64,000 nucleotides of DNA from assembly GCA_951804945.1 (NCBI GenBank), contig OX638151.1:47864001-47928000 (forward strand). The letters are read 5' to 3'. Numbering within the stretch: position 1 is the first letter of the stretch; the number at the start of each line of letters is the position of its first letter. This DNA is from Podarcis cretensis. Taxonomy: Eukaryota. Position numbers and translations under genes: made by a program. The notes under the pieces were generated by a model that saw only the letters and a list, made by a program, of their open reading frames with translations, was not told the origin of the DNA and made no database searches. Below are positions 8,201-45,446 of the stretch, in pieces.

Positions 8201-8764
8201 ACATCAAGTGGATGGTGCTCTTGCATCTTGCACTGGCCTAATTACAGCCCATGGCATAAGAGATAAACCACCGCCACCCCAATGCTTTTGTAGCTTAATA
8301 ACAGTTTAACCCAGTAGTTTCTATTATGCTACAATTAAAGACAAGAGCCAGCTTGAGGGTGATGTGCTGGAGCTACTGGCAATCCTTGCAGACTCTACCT
8401 GAGTGAGTTCCAAATATTTGTTTCTTTGCAACACAAGGAATCAGGAGCAGCCTGTTTTTACCTAAGTGTCCTCTCCAGCTTCCAGTTTTAATGCTGCAGC
8501 TAAGTCCCTATTATGACCATAGCTTAGATAGCTTTCCTCACTGGTGGTGGGAGGTGTGCTACCTATTACAAGATTCAAAAACATGAATGGGAAAATCTGT
8601 GCTTTCCTCTTAAACAACAAAACTTCTTTAATCCTACCACCACAAGTGTATATGTACCGTACTTTGTAGAGTATATGACTTACTAGCATCAGAAACTGAA
8701 TTTATTTTGGTGGGAGTAAAATGTATCTGATTTATGTGTGGGTAATTAACAAACCCTTCATGGA

Positions 8765-8892
8765 TCCCTTCATGGATCACTGCCTTGCCGTGGCGAAGGG
8801 GCTTGAAGAACTCAGAGAAGCTATGAACTATGCCGAGCAGGGCACCCAAGATGAACAGGTCATAGTGGAGAGTTTTGACCAAACGTGATCCA
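8765..8892 (+). ncRNA. HDV-like self-cleaving ribozyme at BovB 5' end (predicted)
   Basis: P1 (T)CCCTTC 8765-8771/GAAGGGG 8795-8801; P2 GGATCAC 8774-8780/GTGATCC 8885-8891; P3 GCC/GGC around L3 TTGCCGT; extended P4 (AACTC/GAGTT, CTATGA/TCATAG, TGCC/GGCA); J4/2 C-C-A-A-A at 8879-8883. Confidence 0.75.
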
Positions 8893-8943
8893 CCTGGAGG
8901 AGGAACCGGCAAACCACTCCAGTATCCCTGCCAAGAAAACTCC

Positions 8944-11900
8944 ATGGACAAAGACAACAGGCATATAAAGGTTATGACGCTGGAAGATGAGCCCCTCAGG
9001 TCGGAAGGCGTCCAACATGCTACTGGGGAAGAGCGGAGGGCAAGTACAAGTAGATCCAGAGCTGATGAAGCGGCTGGGCCAAAGCCGAAAGGACGCTCAG
9101 TTGCGGATATGCCTGGAAGCGAAAGGAAAGTCCAATGCTGTAAAGAAAAATATTGCATAGGAACCTGGAATGTAAGAACCATGAACATGGGTAAGTTGGA
9201 GGTGGTCAAAAATGAGATGGCAAGAATAAATATGGACATCCTGGGCATCAGTGAACTAAAATGGACGGGAATGGGTGAATTCAGTTCGGATGACCATCAT
9301 ATCTACTACTGTGGGCAAGAAACCCGTAAAAGAAATGGAGTGGCCCTCATAGTCAACAAAAGAGTTGCAAAAGCTGTACTGGGATGCAATCTCAAAAATG
9401 ATAGAATGATCTCGATACGAATCCAAGGCAGACCTTTTAACATCGCAGTAATCCAAGTTTATGCACCAACTACTGGTGCTGAAGAAACTGAAATTGACCA
9501 ATTCTATGAAGACTTACAACACCTTATAGAAGTGACACCAAAGAAGGATGTTCTTCTCATTATAGGGGATTGGAATGCTAAAGTAGGGAGTCAAGAGATA
9601 AAAGGAACAACTGGCAAGTTTGGCCTTGGAGATCAAAACGAAGCAGGGCAAAGGCTAATAGAGTTCTGTCAAGAGAACAAGCTGGTCATCACAAACACGC
9701 TTTTCCAACAACACAAGAGACGACTCTACACATGGACATCACCAGATGGGCAGCATCGAAATCAGATTGATTATATTCTCTGCAGCAAAAGATGGAGAAG
9801 CTCTATACAGTCAGCAAAAACAAGACCTGGAGCTGACTGTGGCTCAGATCATCAGCTTCTTATAGCAAAATTCAAGCTTAAACTGAAGAAAGTAGGAAAA
9901 ACCACTGGGCCGGTAAGATACAATCTAAGTCAAATCCCTTATGAATACACAGTGGAAGTGAGGAACAGGTTTAAGGATTTAGATTTGGTGGACAGAGTGC
10001 CTGAAGAACTATGGATGGAGGCTCGTAACATTATACAGGAGGCAGCAACGAAAACCATCCCAATGAAAAGGAAATGCAAGAAAGCAAAGTGGCTGTCCAA
10101 TGAGGCCTTACAAATAGTGGGGGAGAGAAGGCAAGCAAAATGCAAGGGAGATCGGGAAACATACAGGAAATTGAATGCAGATTTCCAAAGAATAGCAAGG
10201 AGAGACAAGAAGACCTTCTTAAACAAGCAATGCAAAGAAATAGAGGAAAGCAATAGAATGGGAAGAACCAGAGATCTGTTCAAGAAAATTGGAGATATGA
10301 AAGGAACATTTCGTACAAAGATTTCCATAATAAAGGACAAAAGTGGAAAGGACCTAACAGAAGCAGAAGACATCAAGAAGAGGTGGCAAGAATACACAGA
10401 GGAATTATACCAGAAAGAAACGGATGTCTCATATACCCCAGGTAGTGTGGTTGCTGACCTTGAGCCAGACATCCTGGAGAGTGAAGTCAAATGGGCCTTA
10501 GAAAGCACTGCAAATAACAAGGCCAGTGGAAGTGATGGTATTCCAGCTGAACTATTTAAAATTTTAAAAGATGATGCTGTTAAGGTGCTACACTCAATAT
10601 GCCAGCAAGTTTGGAAAACTCAGCAGTGGCCAGAAGATTGGAGAAGATCAGTCTACATCCCAATCCCAAAGAAGGGCAGTGCCAAAGAATGCTCCAACTA
10701 TCGCACAATTGCACTAATTTCTCACGCTAGCAAGGTTATGCTTAAAATTCTACAAGGAAGGCTCAAGCAGTATGTGGACCGAGAACTCCCAGAAGTGCAA
10801 GCTGGATTTAGAAGAGGCAGAGGAACCAGAGACCAAATTGCAAACATGCGCTGGATTATGGAGAAAGCTAGAGAGTTCCAGAAAGACATTTACTTCTGCT
10901 TCATTGACTATGCAAAAGCCTTTGACTGTGTCGACCATGGCAAACTATGGCAAGTTCTTAAAGAAATGGGAGTGCCTGATCACCTCATCTGTCTCCTGAG
11001 AAATCTCTATGTGGGACAAGAAGCTACAGTTAGAACTGGATATGGAACAACTGACTGGTTCAAAATTGGGAAAGGAGTACGACAAGGCTGCATTTTGTCT
11101 CCCTGCTTATTTAACTTATATGCAGAATTCATCATGCGAAAGGCTGGGCTGGATGAATCCCTAGCCGGAATTAAGATTGCCGGAAGAAATATCAGCAACC
11201 TCAGATATGCAGATGACACAACCTTGATGGCAGAAAGTGAGGAGGAATTAAAGAACCTTTTATTGAGGGTGAAAGAGGAGAGTGCAAAATATGGTCTGAA
11301 GCTCAATATCAAAAAAACGAAGATCATGGCTACTGGTCCCATCACCTCCTGGCAAATAGAAGGGGAAGAAATGGAGGCAGTGAGAGATTTTACTTTCTTG
11401 GGCTCCATGATCACTGCAGATGGTGACAGCAGCCACGAAATTAAAAGACGCCTGCTTCTTGGGAGAAGGGCAATGGCAGGCCTAGACAGCATCTTGAGAA
11501 GTAGAGACATCACCTTGCCAACAAAGGTCCGTATAGTTAAAGCCATGGTTTTCCCAGTAGTGATGTATGGAAGTGAGAGCTGGACCATAAAGAAGGCTGA
11601 TCGCCGAAGAATTGATGCTTTTGAATTCTGGTGCTGGAGGAGACTCTTGAGAGTCCCATGGACTGCAAGAAGATCAAACCTCTCCATTCTGAAGGAAATC
11701 AGCCCTGAGTGCTCACTGGAAGGACAGATTGTGAAGCTGAGGCTCCAGTACTTTGGCCACCTCATGAGAAGAGAAGACTCCCTGGAGAAGACCCTGATGT
11801 TGGGAAAGATGGAGGGCACAAGGAGAAGGGGGCGACAGAGGACGAGATGGTTGGATAGTGTTTTCGAGGTTACCAGCATGAGTCTGACCAAGCTGCGGGG

Positions 11901-11976
11901 GGCAGTGGAGGACAGGAGTGCCTGGCGTTCTCTGGTTCATGGGGTCACGAAGAGTCGGACACGACTAAACGACTAA
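8944..11976 (+). CDS. BovB ORF: APE endonuclease + reverse transcriptase (1010 aa from first ATG; frame open from 8875)
   Basis: EN motifs IGTWNVRT, GISE, IIGDWNA, IDYIL, SDH; RT motifs QAGFRRGRGT, FIDYAKAFD, GVRQGCILSPCLFN, YADD; no stops or frameshifts. Confidence 0.95.
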   Translation: MDKDNRHIKVMTLEDEPLRSEGVQHATGEERRASTSRSRADEAAGPKPKGRSVADMPGSERKVQCCKEKYCIGTWNVRTMNMGKLEVVKNEMARINMDILGISELKWTGMGEFSSDDHHIYYCGQETRKRNGVALIVNKRVAKAVLGCNLKNDRMISIRIQGRPFNIAVIQVYAPTTGAEETEIDQFYEDLQHLIEVTPKKDVLLIIGDWNAKVGSQEIKGTTGKFGLGDQNEAGQRLIEFCQENKLVITNTLFQQHKRRLYTWTSPDGQHRNQIDYILCSKRWRSSIQSAKTRPGADCGSDHQLLIAKFKLKLKKVGKTTGPVRYNLSQIPYEYTVEVRNRFKDLDLVDRVPEELWMEARNIIQEAATKTIPMKRKCKKAKWLSNEALQIVGERRQAKCKGDRETYRKLNADFQRIARRDKKTFLNKQCKEIEESNRMGRTRDLFKKIGDMKGTFRTKISIIKDKSGKDLTEAEDIKKRWQEYTEELYQKETDVSYTPGSVVADLEPDILESEVKWALESTANNKASGSDGIPAELFKILKDDAVKVLHSICQQVWKTQQWPEDWRRSVYIPIPKKGSAKECSNYRTIALISHASKVMLKILQGRLKQYVDRELPEVQAGFRRGRGTRDQIANMRWIMEKAREFQKDIYFCFIDYAKAFDCVDHGKLWQVLKEMGVPDHLICLLRNLYVGQEATVRTGYGTTDWFKIGKGVRQGCILSPCLFNLYAEFIMRKAGLDESLAGIKIAGRNISNLRYADDTTLMAESEEELKNLLLRVKEESAKYGLKLNIKKTKIMATGPITSWQIEGEEMEAVRDFTFLGSMITADGDSSHEIKRRLLLGRRAMAGLDSILRSRDITLPTKVRIVKAMVFPVVMYGSESWTIKKADRRRIDAFEFWCWRRLLRVPWTARRSNLSILKEISPECSLEGQIVKLRLQYFGHLMRREDSLEKTLMLGKMEGTRRRGRQRTRWLDSVFEVTSMSLTKLRGAVEDRSAWRSLVHGVTKSRTRLND

Positions 11977-12003
11977 ACAACAACAACAACAAATTAACAA
12001 AAG

Positions 12004-12110
12004 CTACCAGCATGAGTTTGACCAAACTGCGGGAGGCAGTGGAAGACAGGAGTGCCTGGCGTGCTCTGGTCCATGGGGTCACAAAGAGTTGGACACGACT
12101 AAACAACAAC
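12004..12110 (+). mobile_element. 5'-truncated BovB (3' end only)
   Basis: 8 substitutions in 100 nt relative to the adjacent full-length 3' end; (CAA)n tail; TSD AATTAACAAAAG at 11992-12003 and 12111-12122. Confidence 0.92.
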
Positions 12111-13691
12111 AATTAACAAAAGTATCAGCTGGGCGCCTAGATTCAAAATGTGATGCTTTGCATGTCTGCTTACAGTTCTTGGCTACTCTGCCTATCCCTC
12201 TTGCAATGAACAAATCATACACTGTTAAGTTTAAAAGCTTTACTTAACTATAGCCAAAGGTCTGGTTCATACATTATTCTGTGCAGCAGAAAGTAGAACA
12301 CTGGTAGATTACTCTTGGATGCAAAATACCGCATATACTGTAGTCTGAACTACATACTCTCAAGTTCAGACACATCCATCTATGGCAAGAAGAGATTGAT
12401 GAAAGGAACAGAAGCAGCTTCACTCCCTAATGGAGAAGAGGGGGCGTGGCCTAGCTCAGTCTGGGAACAGAACTCTCTGGTCTTAATCCCTTCATGCACT
12501 AATTAGCACTCCTGCATAGCTGTTTGACCACTTGCTTACCTTAAATAACTTTCTTAAGTTACTTCTTACCTTCACCTTTAAGCACCTCACTATGCTCACA
12601 GCCACACAGAGAGTTTTTGCTTATTTATTCAAATAATTTAAGGACCCCTGGACATTTAAGTGATTACCTATGACATCGCCTTACCCACACATGACCACTT
12701 GACTGTTTCAGTTGGTGGAATTGGCACTGCTACAGGTGCCAGATAATACGTGTCTCTTTTTGGTGCCTGCTAAAAACATGTTTTTAGACAAGTCTACTCA
12801 GACGCTTAGAAAGTTGAGGTTATTTTAATGTTCTGTATGTTGTAAAGTAGGGTTGTGATTTTTTTCTCAATTTTATTGTATTGTCCTTTTGTAAACCACT
12901 CCAAGGGTTTTTTGTTTTTGTTTTACAATCAAGCAATGTATAAATTTTATGAAATAACTAACCAGATGTAACAGCGTCCTTTAAAAATCCAGCCTGAGCA
13001 AGGAAGTTGTGGGAAGACCAAGATGGGCTGGGCCAGCTGGTTGGGGTTTGGAGTGCTTCCACTTTCGCAGGACAAGAGCTGACACAGGCTTCTGTTGACT
13101 TTTAACTATCGGATTTGTACTGTTCTGAAAGTCAAACAGGGACTGTGCCAGCGCACAGCTAAAGAAACTTTATTTGCATCATGGACTGCAGGGGACGTGC
13201 GAACAAGAGAAAACCTCCAACCCAGAGATCAGGAGACTCTGCTTATCCCTGAGATTTTTCCTCCCGTTTATGTCCAGAGGACGCAAGTGTGGTACTGCTT
13301 TGAATTAAACTACGGAGGCAAAAGCAGACGAAATAAAAGTAACATGGGCGGGGCTTATTAGTGCTGGAGGTTGCCGGTCAGAAGCATGCTGTAAAGTTAT
13401 GAAGAAAACCATCTTATTAATTGGATAGAGAATTTCCGGGTTTACCCTGGAAACCGTATGTTTGTCTATCCATTGGGATTTTGTGACTGGATAACACTGC
13501 CTCTACACAGAAACAGCGGCAAGTAGTGACAAAGATGGCAGCTCCTTCTAATTCGTATACTGTATTAAATTGTCCTGCTAGTGTCAGAACCAATGCAGTT
13601 CTTCATTGCACCCATCTTGCACTTTAGGACTGACGAAACCGTGGCTGGGGAAAATTGGCTTACAATAGCCCTGCAAGGCAGTCCAATCTTA

Positions 13692-14068: not shown

Positions 14069-14425
14069 AAGGTAAAGGTACCCCTGCTCGTACGGGCCAG
14101 TCTTGACAGACTCTGGGGTTGTGCGCCCATCTCACTTAAGAGGCCAGGGGCCAGCGCTGTCCGGAGACACTTCCGGGTCACGTGGCCAGCGTGACATCGC
14201 TGCTCTGGCGAGCCAGAGCCGCACACGGAAACGCCGTTTACCTTCCCGCTGGTAAGCGGTCCCTATTTATCTACTTGCACCCGGAGGTGCTTTCGAACTG
14301 CTAGGTTGGCAGGCGCTGGGACCGAGCAGCGGGAGCGCACCCCGCCGCAGGGATTCAAACCGCCGACCTTTCGATCGGCAAGTCCTAGGCGCTGAGGCTT
14401 TAACCCACAGCGCCACCTGCGTCCC
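14069..14425 (-). mobile_element. Sauria-type SINE, copy B (tandem with A)
   Basis: Same family; TSD GTTCCAATCTTA at 14057-14068 and 14429-14440. Confidence 0.9.
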
Positions 14426-19127: not shown

Positions 19128-19989
19128 CCGTATTTTGCGCCCATAGGATGCACCGGCCCATAGGACGCACCTAGTTTTTTTGGGGGGAAATAAAGAAATT
19201 TTTTTTTTATTTCCCCCCCAGGTGCGGGGCTGGAAGAACCAGGTCGGGGAACAGCGGGAAGGCGCGCTCCGCCTCCCCGCTGTCCCCCGAGCTTGTGGGG
19301 CTGGCGATGGGGAGAAGTGTGCTGAGCCTGGGACTGCAGGCAGCTCTGGGCAGCCACCGGGAGCCGGGGCGGGATTTCGCGCCCCGCTCCTGATGGCTGC
19401 GCAGAGCTGCGCTGAGCCCGGGACTGCAGGCAGCTCTGCGCAGCCACCGGGAGCCGGGCGGGACTTCGCGCCCCCCTCCCGATGGCCACGCAGAGCTGCG
19501 CTGAGCCTGGGACTGCAGGCAGCTCTACGCAGCCACCGGGAGCCGGGCGGGACTTCGCGCCCCGCTCCCGATGGCCGCGCAGAGCTGCGCTGAGCCCGGG
19601 ACTGCAGGCAGCTCTGCGCAGCCATCGGGAGCCGAGCGGGACTTCGCGCCCCGCTCCCGATGGCCGCGCAGAGCTGTGCTGAGCCCGGGACTGCAGGCAG
19701 CTCTGCGCAGCCACCGGGAGCCAGGCGGGACTTCGCGCCCCCCTCCCGATGGCCGTGCAGAGCTGCGCTGAGCCCGGGACTGCAGGCAGCTCTGCGCAAC
19801 CCTCGGAGCCGGTCTCCTGAGGGTTGCGCAGAGCTTCCTGAAGCCTGGAGAGCGAGAGGGGTCGGTGCGCACCGACCCCTCTCGCTCTCCAGGCTTCAGC
19901 GAAAGCCTGCATTCGCCCCATAGGACGCACACACATTTCCCCTTCATTTTTGGAGGGGAAATGTGCATCCTATAGGGCGAAAAATACGG
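19128..19989. mobile_element. Non-autonomous Tc1/mariner-pogo (Tc2-like CCGTA TIR) element
   Basis: TIR CCGTATTTT.CGC...GCGAAAAATACGG; TA TSD; subterminal CCCATAGGACGCAC repeats. Confidence 0.85.
19317..19800. repeat. 89-bp GC-rich minisatellite (~5.5 units) inside the MITE
   Basis: GCTGAGCC recurs at 19321, 19411, 19500, 19589, 19678 and 19767. Confidence 0.92.
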
Positions 19990-28782: not shown

Positions 28783-28919
28783 ATGCATTCTCAAACCCTC
28801 CTGGTACTGTTGCTGTTATAACTTCCAGGATAAGAATGGATGCAAGAGAAAAATGTAGAGTTATCCAAAATGCAGAAAGTTCTCTCATACTTCTGCATTA
28901 TTTCACTTCTTCAATAAAA
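28783..28919 (+). ncRNA. SNORA14: H/ACA box snoRNA SNORA14 (ACA14) in TOMM20 intron 1
   Basis: TGCATTCT.AAACCCTC 5' end; H box AGAGAA 28845-28850; 3' pocket TCCAA/ATTTCAC complementary to 18S GUGAAAU-UC-UUGGA; AUA box 28914-28916 lies 14 nt from the pocket; same host intron as human SNORA14B. Confidence 0.88.
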
Positions 28920-29704
28920 AAACTCATATTCTTTAACGTGATCATTCTTCCTTAAAACACATGCTCACAGAAACTGTTTTAAGTGCCATATTGTGAAACA
29001 TGTTCTCAGAATTGAGCTGGTAGCTTCTCTGTGCTGAATTTTTTCAGGGATTCATACAAACAGTGTAAATATTTTGTGCTTTGTCTTCACTTCTTGATAA
29101 CATTTTCTTCCAGTACGGAAGCCGTTAACTTGTCTCTGGGTGATGGGGCAGTTAAGTGATGTTAGGACATGTGATATGTTAACTGTTTCTCTGTAGCTGT
29201 TCAGTATTCCTGCCATTCTGTCGCTATTCTTATAGGGCATGTGACAAATTGAGGCAGAATAGCTCCCCCACCCCAGAAGTGTTCTTCAAGGCAACATTGT
29301 ATTTAATTATGCCGCTAGGTGGTAGGGCTTCTTACAGTTATTAAAATGTTACCTCCACTCCTGGTAGCAGTGGTCCTCCTGCTGTATAGAGCCTGCAGTG
29401 AGCTCAGGGGGAAATAGTTTTATCCTAGGAAGTGTGTTTCCAGGGAGTATAAGATGTAAATTTGCATAAGTTCTTATAAATAATTCTCTATATACAGGCC
29501 TTTGTAGATGGTTGCTTATCCAAATATGGACCCCTAGCTGTATTATGTTTTATTTTTATATATTTCAAAATGTCCAAGTGTTGTTCTTCCCCCCACGTCA
29601 GTTTGGAGTGCAAATAGTATTGTGATTCAAAGATCAATATATCCTTTTTTCAGTAGATTACCAAAATATAGAACCTGAAAATGTGTGGTGTGTTTAATTC
29701 ATAG

Positions 29705-36162: not shown

Positions 36163-36527
36163 AAGGTAAAGGTAAAGGTACCCCTGCCCGTACGGGCCAG
36201 TCTTGACAGACTCTGGGGTTGGTGCGCCCATCTCACTCAAGAGGCCGGGGGCCAGCGCTGTCCGGAGACACTTCCGGGTCACATGGCCAGCGTGACAAAG
36301 CTGCATCTGGCGAGCCAGCGCAACACACGGAAACGCCGTTTACCTTCCCGCCAGTAAGCGGTCCCTATTTATCTACTTGCACCCGGGGGTGCTTTCGAAC
36401 TGCTAGGTTGGCAGGCGCTGGGACCGAGCAGCGGGAGCGCACCCCGCCGCGGGGATTCGAACCGCCGACCTTCCGATCGGCAAGCCCTAGGCGCTGAGGC
36501 TTTTACCCACAGCGCCACCCGCGTCCC
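36163..36527 (-). mobile_element. Sauria-type SINE
   Basis: Full length; TSD ATTACTTAACATTA at 36149-36162 and 36529-36542. Confidence 0.92.
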
Positions 36528-44541: not shown

Positions 44542-45446
44542 TGTTGTATGCCACCCCAATCTCTGAGCGATGTGAGATTCCAGGGCTTCCAGGCACTTAT
44601 CCAGGATTCAGTGTCCTCAGAATGAGGGACAGCAGAGACTGTTGATAGTATGGTTTATTTACACACATATATACAACCTGAGCCAATGATGGAGGGACTC
44701 ACAGCATTAATACCCCAAGGCGGTCTTGTTTTTCCCATAGCCACAGCCTTAGATTCAAACAGAAATCAAGCATGGCTCTGTCTCTCCAGTTGCTGCTGCT
44801 TCTAGACCAGCTCTCACACATAGCTCTGCTTTAGTCATTCTAGGTAAAGGTAAAGGTAAAGGTACCCCTGCCCGTACGGGCCAGTCTTGACAGACTCTGG
44901 GGTTGTGCGCCCATCTCACTTAAGAGGCCAGGGGCCAGCGCTGTCCGGAGACACTTCCGGGTCACGTGGCCAGCGTGACATTGCTGCTCTGGCCAGAGCC
45001 AGAGCCAGAGCCAGAGCCGCACACGGAAACGCCGTTTACCTTCCCGCTGGTAAGCGGTCCCTATTTATCTACTTGCACCCGGAGGTGCTTTCGAACTGCT
45101 AGGTTGGCAGGCGCTGGGACCGAGCAGCGGGAGCGCACCCCGCCGCAGGGATTCGAACCGCCGACCTTTCGATCGGCAAGCCCTAGGCGCTGAGGCTTTA
45201 ACCCACAGCGCCACCTGCGTCCCTCTTAGTCATTCTAACTACCAGCCAATTGAGGGAGGAGGGTCCCCCCCCCATCTGCCCTCTTCCTTTGTTACGTTAA
45301 CGACCCATACTTAGGGGGCCATTGTCAAGAAGGTGGCCTGGTTATTTCAACAAGCAAGTCCTTGCTGGATCCAGGAATTACCGTAGAAGAGACTCCGGTA
45401 TACAGCCTACCCACCACTGCCTGCACCCTAAGTCCTGCTCACAACA
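44542..45446 (-). mobile_element. Solo LTR (~510 bp) interrupted by a SINE
   Basis: TGTT...AACA termini; flanks ATAT/CTAT; minus-strand TATA-like box and AATAAA; homologous to 26083-26548. Confidence 0.78.
44843..45223 (-). mobile_element. Sauria-type SINE nested in the LTR
   Basis: TSD TTAGTCATTCTA at 44831-44842 and 45226-45237. Confidence 0.92.

Follow-up and report, generated by a model that had tools for sequence, protein, structure and literature searches.

The first 127 nt of a full-length BovB retrotransposon of the lizard Podarcis cretensis probably constitute a ribozyme of the HDV-like type that cleaves itself, which would trim read-through RNA to the first nucleotide of the element. 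The element lies in a window of 64,000 nt (assembly GCA_951804945.1, contig OX638151.1, positions 47,864,001 to 47,928,000, forward strand), and all positions below refer to this window. The lizard form is atypical; as a reading of the sequence, its assignment as a ribozyme is well supported by the position of the fold, by covariation and by homology to relatives that Rfam models can recognize. Doubt about the activity of the lizard RNA arises mainly from the remodelling of its P4/J4-2/P2' module. The features of the element are listed in Table 1.

Table 1. Features of the BovB element and of its candidate 5' ribozyme (window coordinates)
Feature	Position	Strand	Remarks
5' target-site duplication (TSD) ATTAACAAA	8745-8753	+	exact copies at 11993-12001 and 12112-12120
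Tandem repeat of element nt 1-12, CCCTTCATGGAT, private to this copy	8754-8765	+	identical to 8766-8777
Candidate HDV-like ribozyme, 127 nt	8766-8892	+	predicted cut directly 5' of C8766
P1 5' strand CCCTTC	8766-8771	+	6 Watson-Crick pairs with 8795-8800
P2 5' strand TGGATCAC	8773-8780	+	8 perfect bp with 8885-8892
P3 and L3	8782-8794	+	GCC 8782-8784 with GGC 8792-8794; L3 is the 7-nt TTGCCGT, 8785-8791
P1 3' strand GAAGGG and P1.1 nucleotides	8795-8802	+	P1 strand 8795-8800, then G8801 and C8802, P1.1 partners of C8788 and G8787
P4 domain	8805-8878	+	constrained folds; base helix 8807-8813 with 8870-8876
P4 inner helix	8820-8826, 8860-8866	+	constrained folds; GCTATGA with TCATAGT
Possible tandem G.A closure of P4	8805/8806, 8877/8878	+	
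J4/2 CCAAAC	8879-8884	+	candidate catalytic C is C8879, alternatively C8880
P2 3' strand GTGATCCA	8885-8892	+	pairs with TGGATCAC
Conserved 5'-UTR block, ribozyme to ATG	8893-8943	+	aligns in all sampled RTE/BovB lineages
Uninterrupted BovB ORF	8944-11976	+	endonuclease and reverse-transcriptase domains
(ACA)n 3' tail and 3' TSD	11977-12001	+	

The original prediction described the element as an intact BovB LINE, and this is borne out. The ORF contains no stop codon and encodes an endonuclease and a reverse-transcriptase domain (Exo_endo_phos, 7.5e-16; RVT_1, 1.4e-39), and its product shares 95 % identity with a protein of Podarcis muralis, 92 % with one of Zootoca vivipara and 74-79 % with bovine BovB-derived proteins. 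The features that define the BovB/RTE clade are all present, that is one ORF with N-terminal APE and RT, a simple-repeat 3' tail and a TSD, here of 9 bp on either side of the full-length element. The first ATG, placed about 50 nt downstream of the motif, lies 52 nt past P2. A third copy of ATTAACAAA begins at 12112, and a 110-bp 5'-truncated BovB 3' end (12002-12111), roughly 10 % divergent from the full-length element's tail, separates copies two and three. From this arrangement it seems that the same target was hit by two independent insertions.

To map the 5' end of the family, contigs from two DNA runs carrying two lizard organism labels were aligned to 8600-9100. Unrelated flanks begin before 8766 in 108 contigs (36 and 72 in the two runs) and before 8767 in a further 22 and 17. 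Consensus agreement among these flanks is only 0.40-0.46; they are therefore many and different. C8766 is accordingly the first base of the family, and the canonical motif comprises 127 nt (8766-8892), not the 139 nt (8754-8892) originally predicted. C8766 is also nucleotide 1 of P1, the position at which HDV-like ribozymes cut (PMC3774820). The proposal that the P1 5' strand forms the element boundary right after the TSD is not supported for the window copy: there the TSD is followed by the duplicated 12-mer CCCTTCATGGAT instead of the canonical start, and the P1 strand that had been written with a preceding T (T8765) belongs to the second CCCTTCATGGAT copy. The extra 12 nt are private to the window copy and supply a second, upstream P1 5' strand, leaving this copy with two alternative P1 strands. 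A duplication of exactly nt 1-12 would be the expected product of a second pass over an RNA whose 5' end lies at nt 1.

Direct reading of the sequence located each of the predicted helices and junctions, P1, P2, P3, P1.1, P4 and J4/2. The strand order P1-P2-P3-L3-P3'-P1'-P1.1-P4-J4/2-P2' is that of a nested double pseudoknot and is fully contained in 8766-8892, so that the proposed HDV-like topology is supported, and the fold moreover begins at the exact first base of the family. P1' directly abuts P3', and the 3-bp P3 around a 7-nt L3, together with P1.1 pairing, gives 8782-8802 the arrangement characteristic of HDV-like ribozymes. P1.1 consists of G8787-C8802, with C8788-G8801 also possible and the register of this second pair ambiguous. 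Constrained folding divides P4 into three helices. Both the 74-nt P4 domain and the 6-nt J4/2 are followed by a distal P2'; the sole proximal option for P2' is a 4-bp TCAC/GTGG pairing, weaker than the distal 8 bp, and was rejected. The choice of C8879 as candidate catalytic cytosine fits the G-R-C-Y-A-A of the Rfam HDV consensus (GGCUAA): the junction reads G8877 A8878 C8879 C8880 A A A C8884, so that GAC-C-AA-AC ahead of P2' parallels both the GGC-U-AA of Rfam and the GGC-C-AA of a rotifer-type relative, with the acting cytosine, C8879 or C8880, ambiguous from sequence.

Folding energies are compatible with the pseudoknot and do not single it out. The best pseudoknot-free fold, at -38.7 kcal/mol, is a competing nested fold, and the combination of P1, P3 and P4 (-28.4 kcal/mol) with the P2 duplex (-11.0) is similar to it in size. 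The z-score of the pseudoknot-free minimum free energy of the lizard RNA, -1.4, is not significant; across three folds these scores were -1.4, -0.8 and -1.5, a measure that is uninformative for pseudoknots.

A loose HDV descriptor with a P2 of at least 8 bp, run on both strands of the 64-kb window with dinucleotide shuffles as background, matched once, at the candidate site only, against 0.28 chance matches expected per 64 kb; taken by itself, the motif is therefore not significant across the window. Depending on descriptor stringency, chance expectation ranges from 0.28 to 5 matches per 64 kb. The position of the element start is more discriminating. An anchored minimal core, in which a 6-bp P1 starts at nt 1, P3 immediately precedes P1' and a C stands ahead of a P2 of 4 bp or more, turned up in 0.28 % of shuffled versions of the first 150 nt for the lizard, and in 0.22 % and 0.28 % for two groups of related elements, G1 and G2; it is present in all three. 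Among 88 related loci, generic HDV descriptors had a background of 0.4-1 match per kb and were only about 2-fold enriched upstream of ORFs. Given this high background, isolated matches in L026/36, L030/62, L044, L065, L066/67 and L076 were discounted. Within the window, a tRNA-headed SINE (GGTGGCGCTGTGGG...GGTTCGAATCCC) is found as three copies about 95 % identical (14200-14420, 36300-36520 and 45000-45220 (-)), and its matches to a relaxed HDV descriptor were ascribed to chance, by way of its tRNA-like arms. A GC-rich tandem array of ~89-nt units (…GGGAGCCGGGCGGGACTTCGCGCCCC…) at ~19300-19900 likewise gives many spurious descriptor matches on both strands.

Related elements were retrieved as metagenome and genome contigs by protein alignment; among viral contigs, the sole relative was a 5'-truncated fragment (L089). 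Group G1, of bdelloid-rotifer type (L009, L010, L052 and L074), shares 59-60 % amino acid identity with the lizard ORF and 91 % with a Rotaria socialis protein. Counting from the ATG, its four copies resemble one another from -185 on and diverge upstream of that point, which defines nt 1 of G1 independently of the fold. The four flanks are different, and each ends at nucleotide 1 of P1. At this very nucleotide, G1 carries P1 CTCTCAT/ATGAGAG, P3 ACC/GGT and L3 TTTACGT, and its P1-L3 region is visibly homologous to that of the lizard. Group G2 (L017/L020) is 52 % identical to the lizard ORF at the amino acid level. It has P1 GCCCCCC/GGGGGGC, P3 ACG/CGT and L3 TCCAAGT, followed by a GG able to pair with the CC of L3, and the L020 contig starts exactly at nucleotide 1 of P1.

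Base pairs were tabulated by script, MAFFT cross-lineage alignments being found to mis-register P1. Among the lizard, G1 and G2, three related lineages only, double-sided changes with zero mismatch affect 6/7 P1, 2/3 P3 and 1/2 P1.1 pairs. In P3, G-C is replaced by A-T and C-G by G-C, and L3 position 3 pairs with the nucleotide next to P1' on its 3' side as G-C, T-A or C-G, depending on the lineage. L3 measures 7 nt and begins with U throughout; its position 6 is G in every lineage, save for an A in the G1 copy L009. The compensatory changes anticipated for the helices are thus seen between these lineages, and at one P2 pair relative to ruminant-type BovB; this covariation is between lineages and does not extend to variation within the lizard family.

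Searches with covariance models gave no HDV family match for the lizard RNA, whole or core only: stretches of 351 nt and 65 nt matched none of RF00094, RF00622, RF01787, RF01788 and RF02682 at gathering score or at E <= 10. Both groups of relatives, however, score below the gathering score of 44. L020:1-87 reaches 30.3 bits with RF02682 (E = 3.5e-4), 27.4 bits with RF00094 (E = 0.023) and 15 bits with RF01787, and L010:643-720 reaches 26.3 bits with RF02682 (E = 3.4e-3); the RF02682 alignments of both begin at element nt 1. No HDV match was found with Rfam on 19 other RTE loci. A covariance model of the rotifer-type core (R1) proved too sequence-specific, missing both the lizard and L017/L020, and was abandoned. 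It gave one weak match, L012:191-236 (13.1 bits, E = 1.6), about 400 nt upstream of the ORF, which shares the GAAGTCGGA motif of J1/2 and could be a homologue that has degenerated or sits in a different place. Elsewhere in the window, a SNORA14 H/ACA snoRNA occupies 28783-28924 (+), with 96 bits against an Rfam gathering score of 36.

The lack of an Rfam match in the lizard is attributable to remodelling of the P4/J4-2/P2' module. According to the Rfam alignments, G1 and G2 are compact forms of about 80 nt with a short P4 hairpin, GGC-C-AA or GGC-T-AA, and a proximal P2', which in G1 forms 7 bp (ACGTGCA with TGCGCGT). In the lizard, the hairpin homologous to this compact P4 is unpaired, the GGCYAA motif is gone, and P2' lies about 60 nt further downstream than in the compact form, after GAC-C-AA-AC. 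At the place homologous to that of the lizard, G1 additionally contains a distal AAC-G-AA-GCAC... segment, and its P2 5' strand can pair proximally or distally.

Most genomic copies carry T rather than G at 8808, which renders the P4 base helix shorter or weaker. Core variants in the family are of CpG type only (8789, 8794 and 8884), and core, P4 interior and downstream UTR do not differ in variant density among family contigs. Immediately downstream, 8893-8943 and the homologous 5' UTRs (L004, L010, L012, L017, L021-L023 and L069) contain a block of ~45 nt just upstream of the ATG (…GGCAAACCAC…GCCAAGAAAA…). It is conserved in all sampled RTE/BovB lineages, and as its reading frame varies from lineage to lineage, conservation must be at the RNA/DNA level. 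In most lineages the block includes an upstream ATG (AATGGCAAAC), where the lizard has ACCGGCAAAC.

Ruminant-type BovB was represented by seven contigs (L001, L003, L004, L008, L027, L039 and L041), L008 being 95 % identical in amino acid sequence to the BovB portion within a protein model from Moschus berezovskii. These elements align to the lizard from the P4 region onward. Their P2, GGACCAC/GTGGTCC, differs from that of the lizard by one double-sided change, and they lack the ~21 nt that hold P3' and P1'. Upstream, they have several hundred nt of GC-rich repeated units; in L001, L004, L008 and L041 these units (…GAGGAGCTACCCCACGTCCAAGGTCAGG…) lie 5' of the part homologous to the lizard P2 strand. 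Ruminant-type BovB is the derived state with an added repeat-rich 5' extension. Since P3' and P1' have been deleted there, the ribozyme is not a constant feature of BovB, and any argument linking it to horizontal transfer needs qualifying.

Two bulk RNA-seq runs bearing the label of a lizard species that is also found among the runs containing this stretch, from libraries without strandedness information, show that BovB 5' regions are expressed. Read starts do not pile up at 8766. Most reads reaching 8766 continue into flanking sequence, and 61 and 93 reads in the two runs cross it into one dominant flank. These spanning reads are strongly strand-biased, and the majority belong to copies whose private core changes (8786G; 8794T with 8800C) are rare in DNA; they may be antisense or stem from inactive copies, and are taken as evidence neither for cleavage nor against it. 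Additionally, 36 and 30 reads depart from the element at 8964 and run on into sequence of the BovB 3' tail (agreement 0.98), indicating an expressed, internally deleted derivative made up of the 5' ~200 nt and the 3' tail. A bipartite non-autonomous form of this kind is discussed in PMC5786205.

A model that accommodates these observations would run as follows. The element would be transcribed within a longer host RNA, in which P1 would form beside the P3/L3 active-site core and P2 would close the second pseudoknot. With C8879 or C8880 of J4/2 serving as general acid, the RNA would be cut directly 5' of C8766, and the released transcript would begin at element nt 1, its 5' end being the folded ribozyme. 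In the window copy, cutting at the inner P1 strand would drop the 12-mer duplication in the next generation. Catalysis is inferred, and so is a role in vivo, namely promoter-independent processing and possibly 5' protection or translation, as reported for other elements.

The abundance of junction-spanning reads is what a different history would lead one to expect, in which the J4/2-P2' half of an ancestral compact HDV-like ribozyme degenerated in squamate BovB and cleavage ceased, an internal promoter at nt 1 drives transcription, and the helices persist as a structured 5' UTR for translation, RNP assembly or stability. The loss of the proximal P4 hairpin and of GGCYAA in the lizard and its missing Rfam match point the same way, as does the spread of ruminant-type BovB despite complete loss of the core. 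We nevertheless consider such a decayed state unlikely. The distal P2 consists of 8 perfect bp, a pairing that was kept through a double change in ruminant-type BovB, and is preceded by GAC-C-AA, like the GGC-Y-AA of known HDV ribozymes. Moreover, the family core has accumulated CpG-decay variants only, and the junction reads, which are strand-biased and in the main belong to two copies carrying private core substitutions, are hardly informative about intact sense copies.

Retention of P2 and of the P4-homologous region without P3' and P1' in ruminant-type BovB, and the choice between a proximal and a distal partner for the rotifer-type P2 5' strand, could also mean that P2 and P4 are a standalone 5'-UTR structure unrelated to cleavage, to which P1 and P3 were added in a lineage-specific manner. 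This is hardly plausible, as it is P1/P3/L3, not P2/P4, that the lizard shares with the two distant lineages, and as ruminant-type BovB represents the derived state. Likewise, the resemblance might be a coincidental fit to a permissive descriptor, noticed because the start of the element was being inspected; the number of descriptor matches expected in the window, the background in related loci and the non-significant z-score of the free energy leave room for this. Such a coincidence is very improbable when the anchored probability of about 0.3 % per lineage is considered together with the presence of the core in three lineages with different helix sequences, the independent Rfam HDV matches of the relatives at nt 1 and the visible P1-L3 homology with the rotifer-type element. 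An HDV-like ribozyme at nt 1 probably remains the better description of the lizard sequence.

Known ribozymes of mobile elements provide close parallels. HDV-like ribozymes of RTE-clade elements, and the processing of 5' ends by them that the original prediction had taken as known, have been reported (PMC5786205 and PMC6765202, citing Ruminski 2011). Those elements likewise have a single ORF with APE and RT, a ribozyme at the extreme 5' end and a predicted cut at element nt 1, and their ribozymes are likewise proposed to release promoter-less elements from co-transcripts. The lizard case differs in its vertebrate host and BovB lineage, in the absence of detectable similarity to the Rfam drz-agam models, and in its much larger P4 and distal J4/2-P2'. 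The R2 ribozyme (Eickbush & Eickbush 2010; PMC3774820) is also a double pseudoknot in which P1' follows straight on P3/L3, P4 varies and J4/2 holds a catalytic C, the lizard having a candidate C there, and the lizard dimensions fit its ranges (P1 of 6-7 bp, P2 of at least 5 bp, P4 highly variable; PMC3774820). Duplications at R2 5' junctions give rise to two alternative P1 strands, as at 8754-8777 (PMC3774820). R2, by contrast, is site-specific, relies on a restriction-like endonuclease and is transcribed together with 28S rRNA, whereas BovB inserts in many places; and P1 of R2 uses upstream 28S sequence in many lineages, whereas P1 of lizard BovB lies wholly inside the element.

The HDV genomic and antigenomic and F. 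prausnitzii ribozymes (RF00094, RF02682) share the topology, the 3-bp P3 and the 7-nt L3. The consensus L3 of RF02682 is UCUaCGU, and the lizard L3 likewise has U first and C-G-U at positions 5-7; G-R-C-Y-A-A before P2' is common to both as well. Unlike these models, the lizard has a P1 of only 6 bp whose first pair is C-G instead of G.U, and it lacks the GGGCAAC J1/4 motif; the models leave the lizard RNA unscored, only the rotifer-type and G2 relatives scoring, below gathering. Pr77 of the trypanosome L1Tc/ingi elements (Sanchez-Luque 2011, as cited in PMC6765202) is an HDV-like ribozyme at the first nucleotides of an APE-type LINE and sets the mRNA 5' end; it belongs to another clade than BovB and has promoter activity in addition. 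Our literature search found no paper linking BovB to a ribozyme, in agreement with the assumption that none had been shown for squamate BovB, while the 2011 lists of RTE ribozymes may include a BovB consensus. A ribozyme of BovB thus appears not to have been described before, the same trick being known for related RTE elements.

BovB is the textbook example of a horizontally moved retrotransposon, having passed among reptiles, ruminants, marsupials and invertebrates. Knowledge of ribozyme-mediated 5' processing in RTE, R2, R4, L1Tc and other elements dates back to 2010-2011, so that the BovB case is an extension of a known mechanism rather than a new principle. RTE-type elements are in use as RNA-templated gene-insertion tools whose 5' UTRs are undergoing empirical optimisation (PMC13708176), and the candidate lizard ribozyme bears on these elements as well. 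A 5' ribozyme would let any read-through transcript give a correct full-length template without a host-compatible promoter, and one may speculate that it helps the horizontal transfer of BovB. The contrast with ruminant-type BovB, which has lost the core and gained a 5' extension, renders this idea of promoter independence testable. Tentatively, and we regard this as doubtful though possible, BovB may have switched its mode of 5'-end formation: the squamate form would rely on a remodelled ribozyme with distal J4/2-P2', the rotifer-type form would hold both modules and perhaps toggle between P2 pairings, and after transfer to ruminants P3' and P1' would have been deleted and the GC-rich 5' extension, likely a promoter, would have taken over. 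If so, ribozyme processing without a promoter would be the mode by which BovB enters new hosts, and promoter capture the mode by which it settles in them.
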